Shown here in pieces: positions 3,970-19,760 of a stretch of DNA of 64,000 nt. A program made the translations under genes and the position numbers. The DNA lies in the IMG/VR virus record IMGVR_UViG_3300005613_000002, positions 124,001-188,000 of that record. One strand, written 5' to 3'. The notes beneath the pieces are model-generated. The model saw only the letters and a list, made by a program, of their open reading frames with translations. It was not told the DNA's origin and searched no databases. The stretch's first letter is position 1. Each line of letters opens with the position of its first letter.

Positions 3970-4143
3970 ATGAAAAAAATGAAAAGAATTTTAATAGGAA
4001 TTTTACTTACATTAATTGTTATTATGTGTATGGGAATGTTTATAACTTCAATTAATAATTATGAAAATGATGATTCATTAATTGAGATAGAAAAACCTTT
4101 AATGGTTGAAGATTGGATGTTAGATGAAAACTACTTTAATTAA
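3970..4143 (+). CDS. Small protein with N-terminal signal or TM segment
   Basis: MKKMKRILIGILLTLIVIM hydrophobic N-terminus. Confidence 0.5.
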   Translation: MKKMKRILIGILLTLIVIMCMGMFITSINNYENDDSLIEIEKPLMVEDWMLDENYFN

Positions 4144-4247: not shown

Positions 4248-4775
4248 ATGAAAAAATGTTTAATTTATGGTTTATATTGTCCTTTTTTAGATGAACCACA
4301 TTATATTGGGAAAAGTAGTACATCAATGGTTAGACCATTATCACATTTAAATAAATCACATTCTAATGAAATAAATGAATGGGTGAGACAATTAAAATTT
4401 TTAGGTTATAAACCAATTATTAAAATTCTTGAAGAATGTAATATTAATAATGTTGATGAAAAAGAATTATTTTGGATTAAAAAAATATCTAATAATGGTT
4501 ATTATTTATTAAATAAATCACATAATAAAATTGATTTTATTTTAAATAAAAAGGAATATAAATTCAATGATGACGATATTTTAAATGTTGCGGATATGAT
4601 TAAACAAAAAAGAAAAGAATTAAATTACACTCAACTAGATGTCTCAAATTTATGTGGAATCAATAGAAGTACATATATTGAAATTGAAAAAGGCAGTAAA
4701 AAAACTACGTATGGTAATTTAAAAAAAGTTTTAAATGTTTTAGGTTATAAAATAAAAATTGAAAAAAATGAATAG
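4248..4775 (+). CDS. GIY-YIG endonuclease fused to an XRE HTH domain
   Basis: LIYGL..YIGKS..R motif; C-terminal KQKRKELNYTQLDVSNLCGINRSTYIEIEKG; start refined to the ATG after GTATTTAT. Confidence 0.75.
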   Translation: MKKCLIYGLYCPFLDEPHYIGKSSTSMVRPLSHLNKSHSNEINEWVRQLKFLGYKPIIKILEECNINNVDEKELFWIKKISNNGYYLLNKSHNKIDFILNKKEYKFNDDDILNVADMIKQKRKELNYTQLDVSNLCGINRSTYIEIEKGSKKTTYGNLKKVLNVLGYKIKIEKNE

Positions 4776-14994: not shown

Positions 14995-17547
14995 ATGGGA
15001 AAAAACGTTAAAACTTATCCTAGAAAAGAAGTTGAAAAAGCTACTTTAGAATATTTTAATGGTGATGAACTTGCTCGTGATTCATGGATAAAGAAATACT
15101 GTCTAAAACAAAATGACACACTATATGAGCTAACACCAGATGATATGCATCGAAGAATAGCTAAAGAATTAGCAAGAATAGAATCTAAATATCCTAATCC
15201 ATTAAGTGAAGAAGAAATTTTCCAAACAATTAAACAATTTAAGCGAATTATTCCACAAGGTTCACCAATGTCTGGTATTGGAAATGATTATCAAGTCGTA
15301 TCATTAGGAAATTGTTTTGTGATTGGAAATAATGCTGACTCATATGGTGGGATTATGAGAATCGATGAAGAACAGGCTCAATTAATGAAACGTAGAGGTG
15401 GTGTTGGTCATGATTTATCTAAAATTAGACCAGAATTAACACCTGTAAAAAATACAGCAATTAGTTCAACAGGAATTGTTCCATTTATGGAAAGATATTC
15501 TAATTCAACTAAAGAAACTGCACAATCTGGTAGAAGGGGTGCATTAATGTTGTCAGTATCAATCAAACATCCAGATTCAGAAGCGTTTATAGATGCGAAG
15601 ATGACTGAGGGTAAAATCACTGGTGCTAATGTTTCAGTTAAAATTCATGATGATTTTATGGAATCGATTATTGATAATAAAAAATATAAACAACAATTCC
15701 CTATTGATTCAAATAACCCAATTTTTGAAAAAACCGTTGATGCTGGAAAAATATGGAAAAAGATAGTTCATAATGCTTGGAAATCAGCAGAACCCGGGAT
15801 TCTATTTTGGGATAAAATTATAAATGAATCAATTCCATCATGTTACGGTAAAATATGGACTGAAACAAGTACAAATCCATGTGGTGAATTACCATTACCA
15901 CCTTATGATTCTTGTAGATTACTTTCTGTAAATTTATTTGATTATGTAGTTAATCCGTTTACCCCAGAAGCATATTTCAATTGGGAATTATTTAAAAGTG
16001 ATGTTGAAAAAGCATTAAAATATATGGATGATATTGTTGATTTGGAAATTGAGAAAATCAATAAAATTATCGAAAAAATAGATTCTGACCCAGAAGACGA
16101 AGAAATTAAATGGATTGAACGTAAGTTATGGAAAAAAATTCGAGAAATGACAAGTCTTGGACGTAGAACTGGACTTGGAATTACTGGAGAAGGTGATATG
16201 ATTGCTGGAATGAATTTACGTTATGGTACTGATAAAGCAACTGATTTTGCTGAAGAAGTTCATAAACAATTAAAATTAAGCGCATATCGTTCATCAGTTA
16301 AATTGGGTAAAGAACGTGGTGCTTTCCCAATATATGATAGTAATCTTGAAAAAAATAATCCATTTCTTTTAAGAATAAAAGATGAAGACCCTGAGTTATA
16401 TGATGATATGTTGAAATATGGTCGCAGAAATATTGCATTATTAACTATAGCTCCAACTGGAACAGCTTCATTAATGACTCAAACAACATCAGGTATTGAG
16501 CCAGTGTTTTTACCAGTATATAAACGAAGACGTAAAATTAACCCAAATGAAAAAAACGTCAAAATTGATTTTGTTGAGGAAGGTATTGCTTGGCAAGAAT
16601 ATATTGTTTTCCATCATAAATTTGAATTATGGTTAAAAATAAATGATTATGATGTCGATGTAGTTAAAACAATGAGCAAAGAACAATTAGATGAAATAGT
16701 TAAAAAATCACCATATTATAAAGCAACATCTAATGATATTGATTGGGTTAAAAAAGTTGAAATGCAAGGTCGAATTCAAAGACACATTGACCATTCAATT
16801 TCAGTAACTGTTAATTTACCGAAAAATGCTACAGAAGAAATTGTTGGGAAAGTTTATGAAACTGGTTGGCGTACAGGATGTAAAGGAATTACTGTTTATC
16901 GTGATGGTAGTAGAAGTGGTGTTTTGATTGGTGTTGATGAAGAAGATAATAAAACAATCAAAGATATTCATGCACCAAAAAGACCGAAAAGATTAAAAGG
17001 TGAAATTCATCATTTTCAAAATTCATTAGAAAAATGGATTGCTGTTGTTGGTATTAAAGATGGAAGACCATATGAAATATTTACAGGTAAATATGAAAAT
17101 GGTCTAAGTAAATTATCAACAACAATTACTGAATGTGAAATTGTAAAGAATATTGTTGATGTCGAAGAAATTATTGATGGAAAGTCGATTAATGTAAGAA
17201 CAAAACGATATGATATTGAATATCTTGATAGTAATGGTGAAAAACATGTACATACTGGACTTAATCATGCATTCAATCCAGAATTTTGGAACTATGCTAA
17301 ATTAATTTCAGGAATTTTAAGGCATGGTATGCCAATTAAATATATTCATGAATTAATTAATTCACTTAGTTTTAAAGAAGATTATATTAACACATGGAAA
17401 AATGGTGTTGGTCGTGTAATAAAAAGATATATTAAAGATGGTGAAAAAGCCAATGGTGTTTGTCTTGACTGTGGAAGTGGTGAGCATCTTGAATATAAAG
17501 AAGGTTGCTTAACTTGCATGGCATGTGGTTCATCTAAATGTGGATAA
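14995..17547 (+). CDS. nrdJ: Class II (adenosylcobalamin-dependent) ribonucleotide reductase
   Basis: GNCFV, TNPCGELPL, TIAPTGT, SGIEP, KGITVYRDGSR and C-terminal Cys cluster. Confidence 0.92.
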   Translation: MGKNVKTYPRKEVEKATLEYFNGDELARDSWIKKYCLKQNDTLYELTPDDMHRRIAKELARIESKYPNPLSEEEIFQTIKQFKRIIPQGSPMSGIGNDYQVVSLGNCFVIGNNADSYGGIMRIDEEQAQLMKRRGGVGHDLSKIRPELTPVKNTAISSTGIVPFMERYSNSTKETAQSGRRGALMLSVSIKHPDSEAFIDAKMTEGKITGANVSVKIHDDFMESIIDNKKYKQQFPIDSNNPIFEKTVDAGKIWKKIVHNAWKSAEPGILFWDKIINESIPSCYGKIWTETSTNPCGELPLPPYDSCRLLSVNLFDYVVNPFTPEAYFNWELFKSDVEKALKYMDDIVDLEIEKINKIIEKIDSDPEDEEIKWIERKLWKKIREMTSLGRRTGLGITGEGDMIAGMNLRYGTDKATDFAEEVHKQLKLSAYRSSVKLGKERGAFPIYDSNLEKNNPFLLRIKDEDPELYDDMLKYGRRNIALLTIAPTGTASLMTQTTSGIEPVFLPVYKRRRKINPNEKNVKIDFVEEGIAWQEYIVFHHKFELWLKINDYDVDVVKTMSKEQLDEIVKKSPYYKATSNDIDWVKKVEMQGRIQRHIDHSISVTVNLPKNATEEIVGKVYETGWRTGCKGITVYRDGSRSGVLIGVDEEDNKTIKDIHAPKRPKRLKGEIHHFQNSLEKWIAVVGIKDGRPYEIFTGKYENGLSKLSTTITECEIVKNIVDVEEIIDGKSINVRTKRYDIEYLDSNGEKHVHTGLNHAFNPEFWNYAKLISGILRHGMPIKYIHELINSLSFKEDYINTWKNGVGRVIKRYIKDGEKANGVCLDCGSGEHLEYKEGCLTCMACGSSKCG

Positions 17548-17834
17548 TTATCAATTAATCAAGAAATTTGCTTTAAATTATTAGCAAATTTCTTGATTAT
17601 ATAAAAATTTATTTTAATTTTGTTCTAAATTAAATTAATATGATTAATCTTGAAAACAGAATTTCCCAAAGTAATGATAATGAAATTCGTATTAATGGTT
17701 ATTTCTTAACTATTGATGATTTAACTGCATTATCCAGAGATTTTATGGTTGATTGTCGTGATGGTTATGTTAGTTATGATATTTCATATATTGAAGCATG
17801 GCTAAAGAAACATAAACAAATCGTAAAATAAAAA

Positions 17835-19133
17835 ATGAATAGAGGATTCAATTTTAGGGTTTACCCAACTGAAAAACAACGTGAATATTTTAATGAATGT
17901 TTTAGAATTTCAAATTTCATTTATAATTATTCTTTAAGACAACAAATAGACATATCTGAAAGTTTAGATGATATGGGAATTAAAGACAAAGAAGAAAGAA
18001 ATAAATATATGACAGTTAATAAATTATATTTCAATAAATATAAAATGAGTAATTTATTAACTCAAATGTCTAAAACAGAAGAATATTCCTTTTTAAATAT
18101 CAATTCTTTATTAAGAGGTTATTCGTTAAGACAAATTGATAATGCTTTTAAAAATATGAGAAAAACTGGTGCTGGTTTTCCTAAATTTAAAAATAGATTA
18201 TCAAAAAAAACATATTCTAGTCAAATTCAAAAAAGAACTAAATTTCATTTAAATTTAAATAATGAAAAATTTGGATATTTATCGACACATAAAATTGATA
18301 AATTAAAAATATCATGTCATGATGAATATTTTAGAAAAAATTATAAAGATAATACAAAAATTAAATTAAATTCATTTACTATTACAAATAAAGGTAATCA
18401 ATATCATATATCAATTCAGGTAGATGTTATTGACCCAAATTTTAATTTAAAACATAAAGAAAGTGAAATTAATGAAAATTCATCAATAGGAATTGATTTA
18501 GGAGTTAAAAGACCAATTACTACATCAAATATTAATGATTTCGATGAAAAAATATTTTCAACTCAAATACAATTATTAAAAACGTATAGTGAAGAATTAA
18601 AAAAATTATCATCAATATTAAATAAAAAACGTGATTACCATAAAAAAAATAAAACAGATATTAAATATTGGGAAAGTGTTAATTATATTAGAATAAAAAA
18701 TAAAATTAGTTCACTACATATTAAAATTGGTAATATTAGAAGTAATATTCAACATAATATAACAAAAAAATTAATTAATTTAGATAATGTTGATTCATAT
18801 ATTCTTGAAGAATTAAAAACTAAAAATATGATGAAACGTAGTGGGAAAGGTTTATCTAATAATAAAAGTGGGTTAAATAGAGTACTTAGTGATGTTGGAT
18901 TATATGGAATAAGAGAAAAATTAACATATAAAGCTGAACGTATTGGTAAAAATGTTATTACAGTACCACCACAATATACTTCACAAAAATGTTCGAATTG
19001 TGGTCATATTAATAAGAAAAATAGAAAATCTCAAAGCAAATTTAATTGTGTTAAATGTGGTTTTAAAATTAATGCAGATTTAAATGCTGCGATAAATATA
19101 AAAGATAAATATTTTAAAAAAAATGTTGTTTAA
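17835..19133 (+). CDS. TnpB/Cas12f-like RNA-guided nuclease (compact type V effector candidate)
   Basis: OrfB HTH RVYPTEKQ, RuvC-I GIDLG, RuvC-II LEEL, CSNC/CVKC Zn finger, RuvC-III NADLNAAINI; CRISPR array 200 nt downstream. Confidence 0.85.
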   Translation: MNRGFNFRVYPTEKQREYFNECFRISNFIYNYSLRQQIDISESLDDMGIKDKEERNKYMTVNKLYFNKYKMSNLLTQMSKTEEYSFLNINSLLRGYSLRQIDNAFKNMRKTGAGFPKFKNRLSKKTYSSQIQKRTKFHLNLNNEKFGYLSTHKIDKLKISCHDEYFRKNYKDNTKIKLNSFTITNKGNQYHISIQVDVIDPNFNLKHKESEINENSSIGIDLGVKRPITTSNINDFDEKIFSTQIQLLKTYSEELKKLSSILNKKRDYHKKNKTDIKYWESVNYIRIKNKISSLHIKIGNIRSNIQHNITKKLINLDNVDSYILEELKTKNMMKRSGKGLSNNKSGLNRVLSDVGLYGIREKLTYKAERIGKNVITVPPQYTSQKCSNCGHINKKNRKSQSKFNCVKCGFKINADLNAAINIKDKYFKKNVV

Positions 19134-19335
19134 ATCGAATATTGTAATTATATTCGCATATTGAAATAAAGTTCTTTGAAAGATAAATATTAAAATCATG
19201 TGGGTGATGTGGCATCCGAGATTTAAAAAAATAAAGTTCTTAGTAAATAAAGCAATTTTATCTCCAATAGGATTTAAAAAATGAATTGAATTTATGATTA
19301 TAGAATTGAATCTTACTACTTTTATAAATGTATTA

Positions 19336-19666
19336 TAACTACAACGATGTCTTCGCATCATTCCATTGACATTCTGGTAGTGTTTACCTAAAAAAGTAAG
19401 GTAACTACAACCTACCCATAACATAAACGTTTTCAGATTTCGGTAGTGTTTACCTAAAAAAGTAAGGTAACTACAACCAGCAAATGTTTTATAGTTTTTA
19501 CCATCAAGGTAGTGTTTACCTAAAAAAGTAAGGTAACTACAACAAGTGAACTACAAGAAATATACAGCGAATTGGTAGTGTTTACCTAAAAAAGTAAGGT
19601 AACTACAACATTTCCAATCGTAAGATATTTTGGGTTGTGTTTACTAAAAAGTATGGAAACTACAAT
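19336..19666. CRISPR. Mini CRISPR array, 36-nt repeat GGTAGTGTTTACCTAAAAAAGTAAGGTAACTACAAC
   Basis: Identical repeats at 19376, 19442, 19508 and 19574; 30-nt spacers; partial repeat TAACTACAAC 19336-19345; degenerate repeat ~19633-19666. Confidence 0.92.
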
Positions 19667-19760
19667 GATGATGGTGCAATGAATTGGGGTAGTTTGAAAA
19701 AGACAATTGTAATAAAATTGTAATAAAATTGAAATAAAAATTGAAATAAAAATTGAAAAA

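Follow-up and report, generated by a model that had tools for sequence, protein, structure and literature searches.

Several groups of compact type V CRISPR effectors resemble the system described here. V-U variants are already known in huge phages (PMC7162821), and forty V-U* branches, V-U6 to V-U45, have been distinguished (Altae-Tran et al. 2023, PMC10691335). TranC systems have been described as transposon-CRISPR intermediates with a split guide RNA (Jin et al., Cell 2025, doi 10.1016/j.cell.2025.09.004, as cited in PMC13565253 and bioRxiv 10.64898/2026.03.27.714800). The CauTranC9 clade has a mean protein length of 414 amino acids (aa), 38-bp repeats and spacers matching phages (bioRxiv 10.64898/2026.03.27.714800). 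Cas12r (564 aa; bioRxiv 10.64898/2026.04.20.719267) and CasPhi (approximately 750 aa; PMC7162821) both work without trans-activating CRISPR RNA (tracrRNA), while Cas12n (V-U4) has a tracrRNA inside the 3' part of its open reading frame (ORF) and an unstructured C-terminal tail (bioRxiv 10.64898/2026.03.27.714800). Here we describe a locus in a 64,000-nucleotide (nt) stretch (the window; bases 124001-188000) of IMG/VR virus record IMGVR_UViG_3300005613_000002, which is 321,624 base pairs (bp) in length, has direct terminal repeats and is judged complete. The locus comprises a gene for a TnpB-sized nuclease, a putative tracrRNA and a short array. With a probability of roughly 0.8, we consider it to be a miniature type V CRISPR system of V-U/TranC-like kind that is encoded by the phage and depends on a tracrRNA.

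A cassette of nuclease, structured RNA and array in a phage-only clade

The nuclease is 432 aa in length, is encoded at 17835-19133 (+ strand) and is assigned to the TnpB-fold RNA-guided nuclease group (Cas12-like effector) on the basis of domain matches, invariant residues and an AlphaFold (AF2) model. It matches the Pfam domains HTH_OrfB_IS605, OrfB_IS605 and Cas12f1-like_TNB and scores 220 bits with the NCBIfam model guided_TnpB (cut-off 100), whereas the Cas12-specific NCBIfam models are all far under their cut-offs (83 vs 450 bits for Cas12f2 and 85 vs 350 for c2c8). PADLOC scores are 138 bits for Cas12f, with a model that has no defined cut-off, and 149 bits for Cas12u4; the PHROGs annotation is transposase. 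The AF2 model has a predicted local distance difference test (pLDDT) score of 89.7, is confident nearly to the final residues and shows no tail. Its closest folds are ISDra2 TnpB, ISFba1 TnpB and AsCas12f, at approximately 20% identity, and profile comparison also ranks ISDra2 and ISFba1 TnpB best, with RdCas12n at E 1e-44 and LaTranC more distant (E 1.6e-26). An earlier, sequence-only reading of the window had described a compact TnpB/Cas12f-like nuclease with its RuvC triad intact, and this description holds: D221/E325/D415 are invariant in an alignment of 39 relatives, as are the zinc ribbon residues C386/C389/C405/C408. Judged from these residues, the catalytic site is intact.

A search of 5.8 billion proteins yielded a sharp group of approximately 43 sequences with identities of 36-73%, after which values fell to approximately 30% (generic TnpB). 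Phylogenetic analysis, a check proposed with the sequence-only reading, gave a monophyletic clade of 44 proteins (Shimodaira-Hasegawa-like approximate likelihood ratio test [SH-aLRT] 98, stem 0.57). Members of this clade are found solely on phage or metagenome contigs; none above 34% identity was detected in 185,579 prokaryote genomes (one per species), in INPHARED or in the rest of IMG/VR.

Contigs were fetched for 13 clade members, and those with enough downstream DNA were used for the array count (L087/L088, L093, L094, L095, L096, L097, L101, L102, L103 and the window). At all ten of these loci, a repeat unit or array is located 226-268 nt past the stop codon in the same orientation as the gene. 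The repeats are 36 nt in each case, with spacers of approximately 30 nt and proteins of 425-531 aa, while array size varies from one full repeat (L102) up to twelve. Array-bearing members are dispersed over the clade tree, and no spacer is common to two clade loci among those fetched. As a control, other phage TnpB loci were inspected, and array-like repeats were present at only 7/80. A RuvC effector with a conserved array association, the combination that defines type V, was thus found at 10/10 clade loci. The nuclease does belong with the mini array, as had been supposed: gene, structured RNA and array are one cassette retained across a phage-only clade.

In the window, four exact 36-nt repeats (GGTAGTGTTTACCTAAAAAAGTAAGGTAACTACAAC) and the three 30-nt spacers between them occupy 19376-19609 on the + strand (repeat copies at 19376-19411, 19442-19477, 19508-19543 and 19574-19609; period 66 nt), and there is no further copy of the repeat elsewhere in the 321,624-bp genome. 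They are preceded by a first repeat of 23 nt (19323-19345), partly degenerate and truncated at its 5' end, after which comes spacer 0 (30 nt, 19346-19375). The truncated repeat is identical to repeat nt 14-36 at 19/23 positions, an alignment score reached by 0/300 shuffles; it ends exactly 30 nt ahead of the first full repeat and still contains the 5-mer CTACA that takes part in the pseudoknot described below. Only 10 nt of this partial repeat had been recognized in the sequence-only reading. The last spacer is shortened to 23 nt (19610-19632), and at the trailer end there is a degenerate terminal (fifth) repeat of 34 nt (19633-19666) containing GTATGG, like the repeat of L086, the closest relative.

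Arrays elsewhere show some variation. In L102, the sole full repeat (4086-4121) is followed by degenerate fragments, an arrangement that amounts to a fixed single guide. L093 and L094 each contain an identical spacer twice (4653-4682 and 4982-5011 in L093; 4604-4633 and 4934-4963 in L094) as well as some shortened spacers (15, 8, 18 and 20 nt), which suggests that these two arrays have been reshaped by internal duplication and deletion, beyond ordered acquisition. Array-like repeats are also found near the phage TnpB genes L010, L015, L021 and L034, and directly downstream of the TnpB gene L025 (4239-4393); the latter region does not match the covariance model R1 introduced below.

The nuclease gene is present in one copy and starts 3 nt past the upstream ORF. 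No Cas1, Cas2 or Y1 TnpA was found across the entire phage genome, which extends an absence previously noted for the neighbourhood alone. If the gene were a plain selfish TnpB of the IS605 family, next to an unrelated array by chance, this would explain why the best curated match is generic TnpB and why PHROGs labels the protein a transposase. We consider this explanation extremely unlikely, given the single gene copy, the lack of TnpA in the phage, the 3-nt gap that leaves no room for a left end, the arrays at every counted clade locus (compared with the 7/80 control loci) and an RNA that covaries with the repeats.

Pairing of the putative tracrRNA with the repeats

Gene and array are separated by a conserved, structured RNA, which is best read, on its sequence features, as a tracrRNA. 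This putative tracrRNA is approximately 160 nt in length (19163-19323, + strand), with its start predicted from a promoter-like box and its end from a T-run at 19320-19323. The scaffold begins approximately 30 nt past the stop codon, behind the conserved box TATATTCG (19149-19156, + strand), which has one mismatch to the Bacteroidota -7 box TAnnTTTG and falls in an identical alignment column in relatives. We infer from this positional conservation only that the box is the tracrRNA promoter. The elements that follow are, in order, GTTCTTTGAAA, hairpin H1, an A-rich linker, helices P3 and P4, which enclose a variable stem, closing helix P1, the anti-repeat segment and the T-run. GTTCTTTGAAA (19171-19181, + strand) is near-invariant and among the most conserved stretches of the RNA; its GTTC forms the 5' strand of P1 and pairs with 19308-19311. 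Hairpin H1 (19201-19217, + strand) has the loop TGTGG at 19208-19212, which pairs with repeat nt 30-34 (CTACA), and the anti-repeat ATCTTACT (19310-19317, + strand) pairs with repeat nt 20-27 (AGTAAGGT).

RNAalifold predicts 27 consensus base pairs from nine loci, 13 of them with compensatory double changes. With 12 loci, including the most divergent, the alignment was poor and H1 alone was recovered; the nine-locus alignment was used instead. An Rfam search of the scaffold region gave no family match. The sequence-only reading had treated this region as an omegaRNA-like scaffold opening with a boxA-like element. A conserved RNA is indeed present, but its anti-repeat and pseudoknot are those expected of a tracrRNA and not of an omegaRNA that overlaps the gene. 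Similarly, the element GTTCTTTGAAA, which we take to be boxA-like by comparison with the E. coli consensus, is near-invariant, but it is situated 38 nt past the stop codon and not at the start of the region.

Both contacts between the putative tracrRNA and the repeats covary. The pseudoknot between the H1 loop and the repeat is paired at 50/50 bp across ten loci and seven haplotypes (TGTGG:CTACA, TGTAG:CTACA, TGTAA:TTACA, TGAAG:CTTCA, TGTGA:TCACA, TGTCA:TGACA and TGTTA:TAACA), and shuffled loop/repeat partners attain complete pairing in 5e-5 of trials. The anti-repeat, held in a fixed register, pairs at 7-11/12 positions in 11/12 loci although the sequences differ. Its pairing in L090 is 10/12 after manual correction of the repeat register, and cognate partners are distinguished from shuffled partners with p ~0.03 by a crude score. 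The array therefore co-evolves, at two sites, with an RNA encoded beside the nuclease, which argues that the nuclease system uses these repeats. As far as covariation can tell, this ties the array to the phage effector and not only to a host Cas protein, a condition on which the sequence-only reading had been staked. Since the covarying contacts are with the repeat's 3' half, read on the + strand, the working strand is probably + with the spacer 3' of the repeat, and the CRISPR RNA (crRNA) would consist of the 3' part of the repeat, as a 5' handle, and the spacer 3' of it.

This RNA family appears to be wider than the protein clade. A covariance model (R1) was built from nine loci with L101, L102 and L103 held out, and it recovered all three. 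R1 also matched two distant array-bearing phage loci, L018 (51 bits) and L016 (33 bits), the proteins of which are only 29% identical. The contacts hold in both (TGTAA:TTACA in L018 and TGCAG:CTGCA in L016; anti-repeats 11/12 and 9/9, respectively, by eye). The same scaffold, anti-repeat and pseudoknot logic, and arrays, are thus present at L018 (4116-4520) and L016 (4385-4920). L016 belongs to a 640-kb phage record with three TnpB-like genes (L009, L016 and L032), and its repeat ends GCAAC. Among approximately 155 ordinary, array-less phage or bacterial TnpB loci R1 had no match, hence no omegaRNA ancestor of the scaffold was found.

It had also been suggested that the locus may encode a natural single-guide RNA. 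On this view, tracrRNA, truncated repeat and spacer 0 would form one molecule, as in an omegaRNA, and the full repeats would be secondary. The spacing is suggestive, as in most loci 54-59 nt separate the anti-repeat from the first full repeat, which corresponds to a truncated repeat plus approximately 30 nt. Moreover, there is no canonical terminator hairpin ahead of the T-run, and the truncated repeat, which is clear in the window, L103 and L018, keeps the part contacted by the tracrRNA. Nevertheless, the window retains just 5/8 of the anti-repeat pairs, with no stem predicted (-0.3 kcal/mol), the truncated repeat is not significant in most relatives and covariation tracks the full repeats. 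We therefore regard a single-guide mode as unlikely. Support for it is weak in the window itself, but its layout, which resembles an engineered single guide, recurs in L103 and L018 and may descend from the 3' end of an ancestral omegaRNA or from a junction at which an array was joined.

In the tracrRNA-dependent system that we favour, a Bacteroidota-type promoter of its own would drive transcription of the tracrRNA, possibly with read-through into the array. The nuclease would be loaded with the tracrRNA:crRNA duplex and would then cut matching DNA beside a protospacer-adjacent motif (PAM). Such a system would probably serve to compete, within a Bacteroidota host, against rival phages or mobile elements.

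Host type VI-B repeats, spacer targets and phage context

Type VI-B arrays have 36-nt repeats and 30-nt spacers, with crRNAs arranged as spacer-then-repeat, and Cas13b recognizes a whole-repeat hairpin (PMC13187072). A pattern made from the clade repeats matched true arrays in 2/401 sampled Bacteroidota genomes (G133 and G329). Both of these host arrays adjoin cas13b, and one also adjoins csx27, so they are of type VI-B; the G329 array has 25 repeats. The repeat of phage locus L087 is identical to one host VI-B repeat at 33/36 positions, while the best phage-phage pair in the clade reaches 27/36, and a phage with a nuclease 71% identical to that of L087 has a clearly different repeat. The phage repeats keep a whole-repeat hairpin, the 5' arm of which covaries with the 3' arm. 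Published Cas13b direct repeats have the form GTTG...ACAAC and are placed 3' of the spacer; the phage arrays presumably share their transcribed strand. From these comparisons, the clade repeats are homologous to Bacteroidota type VI-B repeats. The Bacteroidetes-like character attributed to the repeats earlier is thus upheld and made specific, by an identity of 33/36 in one case, although that reading took the reverse complement and the strand predicted to be in use is +.

For the repeat of the window itself, no such counterpart was found: an exact 22-mer from it is absent from the 185,579 species genomes, and no array with a window-type repeat 3' end is present in 401 genomes of the class. Spacers of the host VI-B arrays do not match the collected phage sequences. 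A search of the phage genome for Cas13b gave no match, but its control search likewise matched nothing.

As the phage has no Cas1 or Cas2, it cannot itself supply new spacers. Given the homology of the repeats, the spacers probably come from the host's machinery or by recombination with arrays of the host. The borrowing of host adaptation machinery, raised in the sequence-only reading, is therefore a reasonable conjecture, and VI-B arrays are known to gain spacers in trans (PMC8092290).

A bolder possibility, which we hold only tentatively and think doubtful, is that the nuclease runs on arrays of host VI-B repeats, such that one transcript strand is legible to both the nuclease and Cas13b. 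If the repeats are shared in this way, the phage could obtain spacers via host machinery or host arrays, and host VI-B transcripts could serve as DNA guides, or guides or decoys could be fed to host Cas13b. A type V lineage would then have been born by array capture and not by duplication of its own omegaRNA. The homology makes two questions testable, namely how phage arrays lacking Cas1-Cas2 obtain spacers and whether type V can originate by capture of the array of another CRISPR type.

The same homology raises the question of whether the array mainly serves host Cas13b: the repeats would mimic those of the host, and Cas13b would be loaded with crRNAs made by the phage, either as a decoy (an RNA anti-CRISPR) or to redirect it against rival phages. 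In favour of this explanation, the L087 repeat is nearer to a host VI-B repeat (33/36) than to any other clade phage repeat (27/36 at most) and the matching host arrays adjoin cas13b. It would also account for the retention of the covarying whole-repeat hairpin, which is what Cas13b recognizes (PMC13187072), when the tracrRNA touches only nt 17-34 of the repeat. Weighed against these points are the covariation of the tracrRNA contacts with the repeats and the lack of a close host counterpart to the window's own repeat among the genomes searched, and we judge it improbable that Cas13b is the main user. In the converse variant, the phage nuclease could read host VI-B transcripts. Either variant can coexist with a tracrRNA-dependent phage system.

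Spacer targets offered little help. Window spacers do not match their own phage genome or any fetched locus. The only protospacer-like match obtained was in L095, where spacer 2 (4665-4694) agrees at 28/30 positions with its own nuclease gene's 3' end, stop codon included (4276-4305, minus strand), with mismatches at positions 2 (PAM-proximal) and 18 and a T-rich 5' flank ending ATATTT. This could indicate autoregulation, or a spacer taken from the homologous locus of a related phage. This self-match, with its PAM-proximal mismatch, would fit a protein that only binds DNA, for transcriptional repression or autoregulation, and does not cut. However, such a match is confined to one locus and might arise from the targeting of related phages, and the catalytic residues are invariant across the clade; a binding-only regulator thus seems very improbable.

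Several results weigh against a tracrRNA-dependent type V system at this locus. The tracrRNA fold is no more stable than shuffled sequences (z +0.37), and the structural case therefore rests on covariation. The TAnnTTTG motif is not enriched across the window, and the window's own box has one mismatch to it. In INPHARED, no spacer from the window, L087, L101 or L094 has a match, exact 24-mers of window spacers 0, 1 and 3 have none in IMG/VR, and no protospacers were found in a 104-kb related phage record or in the candidate host genomes G133 and G329. The spacer search proposed with the sequence-only reading accordingly gave no target in phage collections, the phage's own genome or the candidate hosts. 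No public sequencing runs were listed that could serve as evidence of expression or processing. Finally, no Cas1 was detected in G133 and G329, the two host genomes with similar repeats, the assemblies of which may be incomplete.

The window has a G+C content of approximately 27%, and nearly all of its genes share one strand. Among the phage proteins encoded on clade contigs are ribonucleotide reductase (RNR), a VWA protein, a baseplate protein of T4 type and homing endonucleases. In the window and L094 the cassette precedes the VWA gene, but in L087 and L090 it follows it, which indicates that the cassette has moved locally as a unit; it is a stable component of a large-phage lineage. The nearest relatives of the RNR are those of uncultured huge phages and crAss-like Bacteroides phages, consistent with a Bacteroidota host, and the lineage carrying the cassette probably infects Bacteroidota.

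The large RNR subunit in the window (14995-17547; 850 aa) has no intein, while those of L087 (1-293; 1218 aa) and L090 (1-543; 1032 aa) contain an intein with a LAGLIDADG endonuclease. Directly past the RNR gene is a 27-nt inverted repeat (17546-17609; 85% complementary, loop of 10 nt), which is probably a terminator. On the far side of the cassette, tandem 11-12-nt units (ATTGTAATAAA x2, ATTGAAATAAAA x2 and ATTGAAAAAATG) are found at 19708-19760, directly upstream of the VWA start codon (19761).

Comparison with known systems

As a natural example of the smallest class of CRISPR effectors, the cassette is parsed in full, with a 432-aa protein, a putative tracrRNA of approximately 160 nt and two mapped crRNA contacts. 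Its defined repeat and spacer units are suited to a PAM screen and single-guide design.

The best fold and profile matches, ISDra2 and ISFba1 TnpB, have equal domain order and size. They differ in context: the phage locus has no transposon surroundings and no gene-overlapping omegaRNA, and its guides are array-derived. Two TnpB-type identities were considered and rejected. An omegaRNA that overlaps the 3' end of the gene and takes its guide from flanking DNA does not fit, as the scaffold is past the stop codon and the repeats covary with it; an active IS605 element does not fit a single-copy gene that starts 3 nt past the upstream ORF in a genome without TnpA.

Like AsCas12f and Un1Cas12f1, the phage protein is a miniature effector with RuvC and zinc ribbon, and the tracrRNA is between gene and array. 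In Cas12f, the guide RNA has two repeat:anti-repeat contacts, of which one is a pseudoknot beside the guide. The two-contact layout here resembles Cas12f and TnpB guide RNAs. Identity to Cas12f is approximately 18%, however, and the NCBIfam Cas12f2 model is far under its cut-off; by this curated model, membership in Cas12f (V-F) was rejected (83 vs 450 bits). Despite the sequence similarity, Cas12n was also rejected, as the tracrRNA here is past the stop codon and no C-terminal tail is present in the model.

Cas12r (Thermus Lalka phages) and CasPhi/Cas12j (huge phages) are likewise type V effectors of phages that come with short arrays and lack adaptation genes. The present system is smaller than either and, unlike them, has a conserved putative tracrRNA. 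CauTranC9 is also similar in form, being encoded by a tailed phage, approximately the size of TnpB, without expanded REC/WED, with a short array and with a proposed role in inter-phage conflict (bioRxiv 10.64898/2026.03.27.714800). Compared by description, the window clade differs in its 36-bp repeats, its proteins of 425-531 aa and its lack of spacer matches.

The type VI-B arrays of Bacteroidota and the phage arrays are alike in their 36/30-nt geometry, their GTTG...GGTAA..ACAAC repeats, the whole-repeat hairpin and an identity of up to 33/36. They are unlike in how they would be read: in the phage, a DNA nuclease is predicted to use a guide situated 3' of the repeat, while the order for Cas13b is spacer-then-repeat (PMC13187072).

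Overall, the clade fits the known TnpB-derived type V (V-U/TranC-like) kind, with the numbered V-U and TranC clades compared by description only. As in TranC and V-U6 to V-U45, the nuclease is TnpB-sized, groups with generic TnpB in sequence models and is followed by an array, and no other cas genes are present. A guide split into tracrRNA and crRNA, predicted here from sequence, is a further likeness to TranC. The nucleases of the TranC study by Jin et al. (Cell, 2025) reportedly use both a CRISPR RNA and a single, transposon-type reRNA. The idea of a TnpB-to-Cas12 intermediate, raised from the sequence at the outset, agrees with this published V-U*/TranC concept. What sets the window clade apart is the homology of its repeats to host type VI-B repeats, which is not reported for TranC or V-U in the literature cited and is, of the features described, the likeliest to be new.

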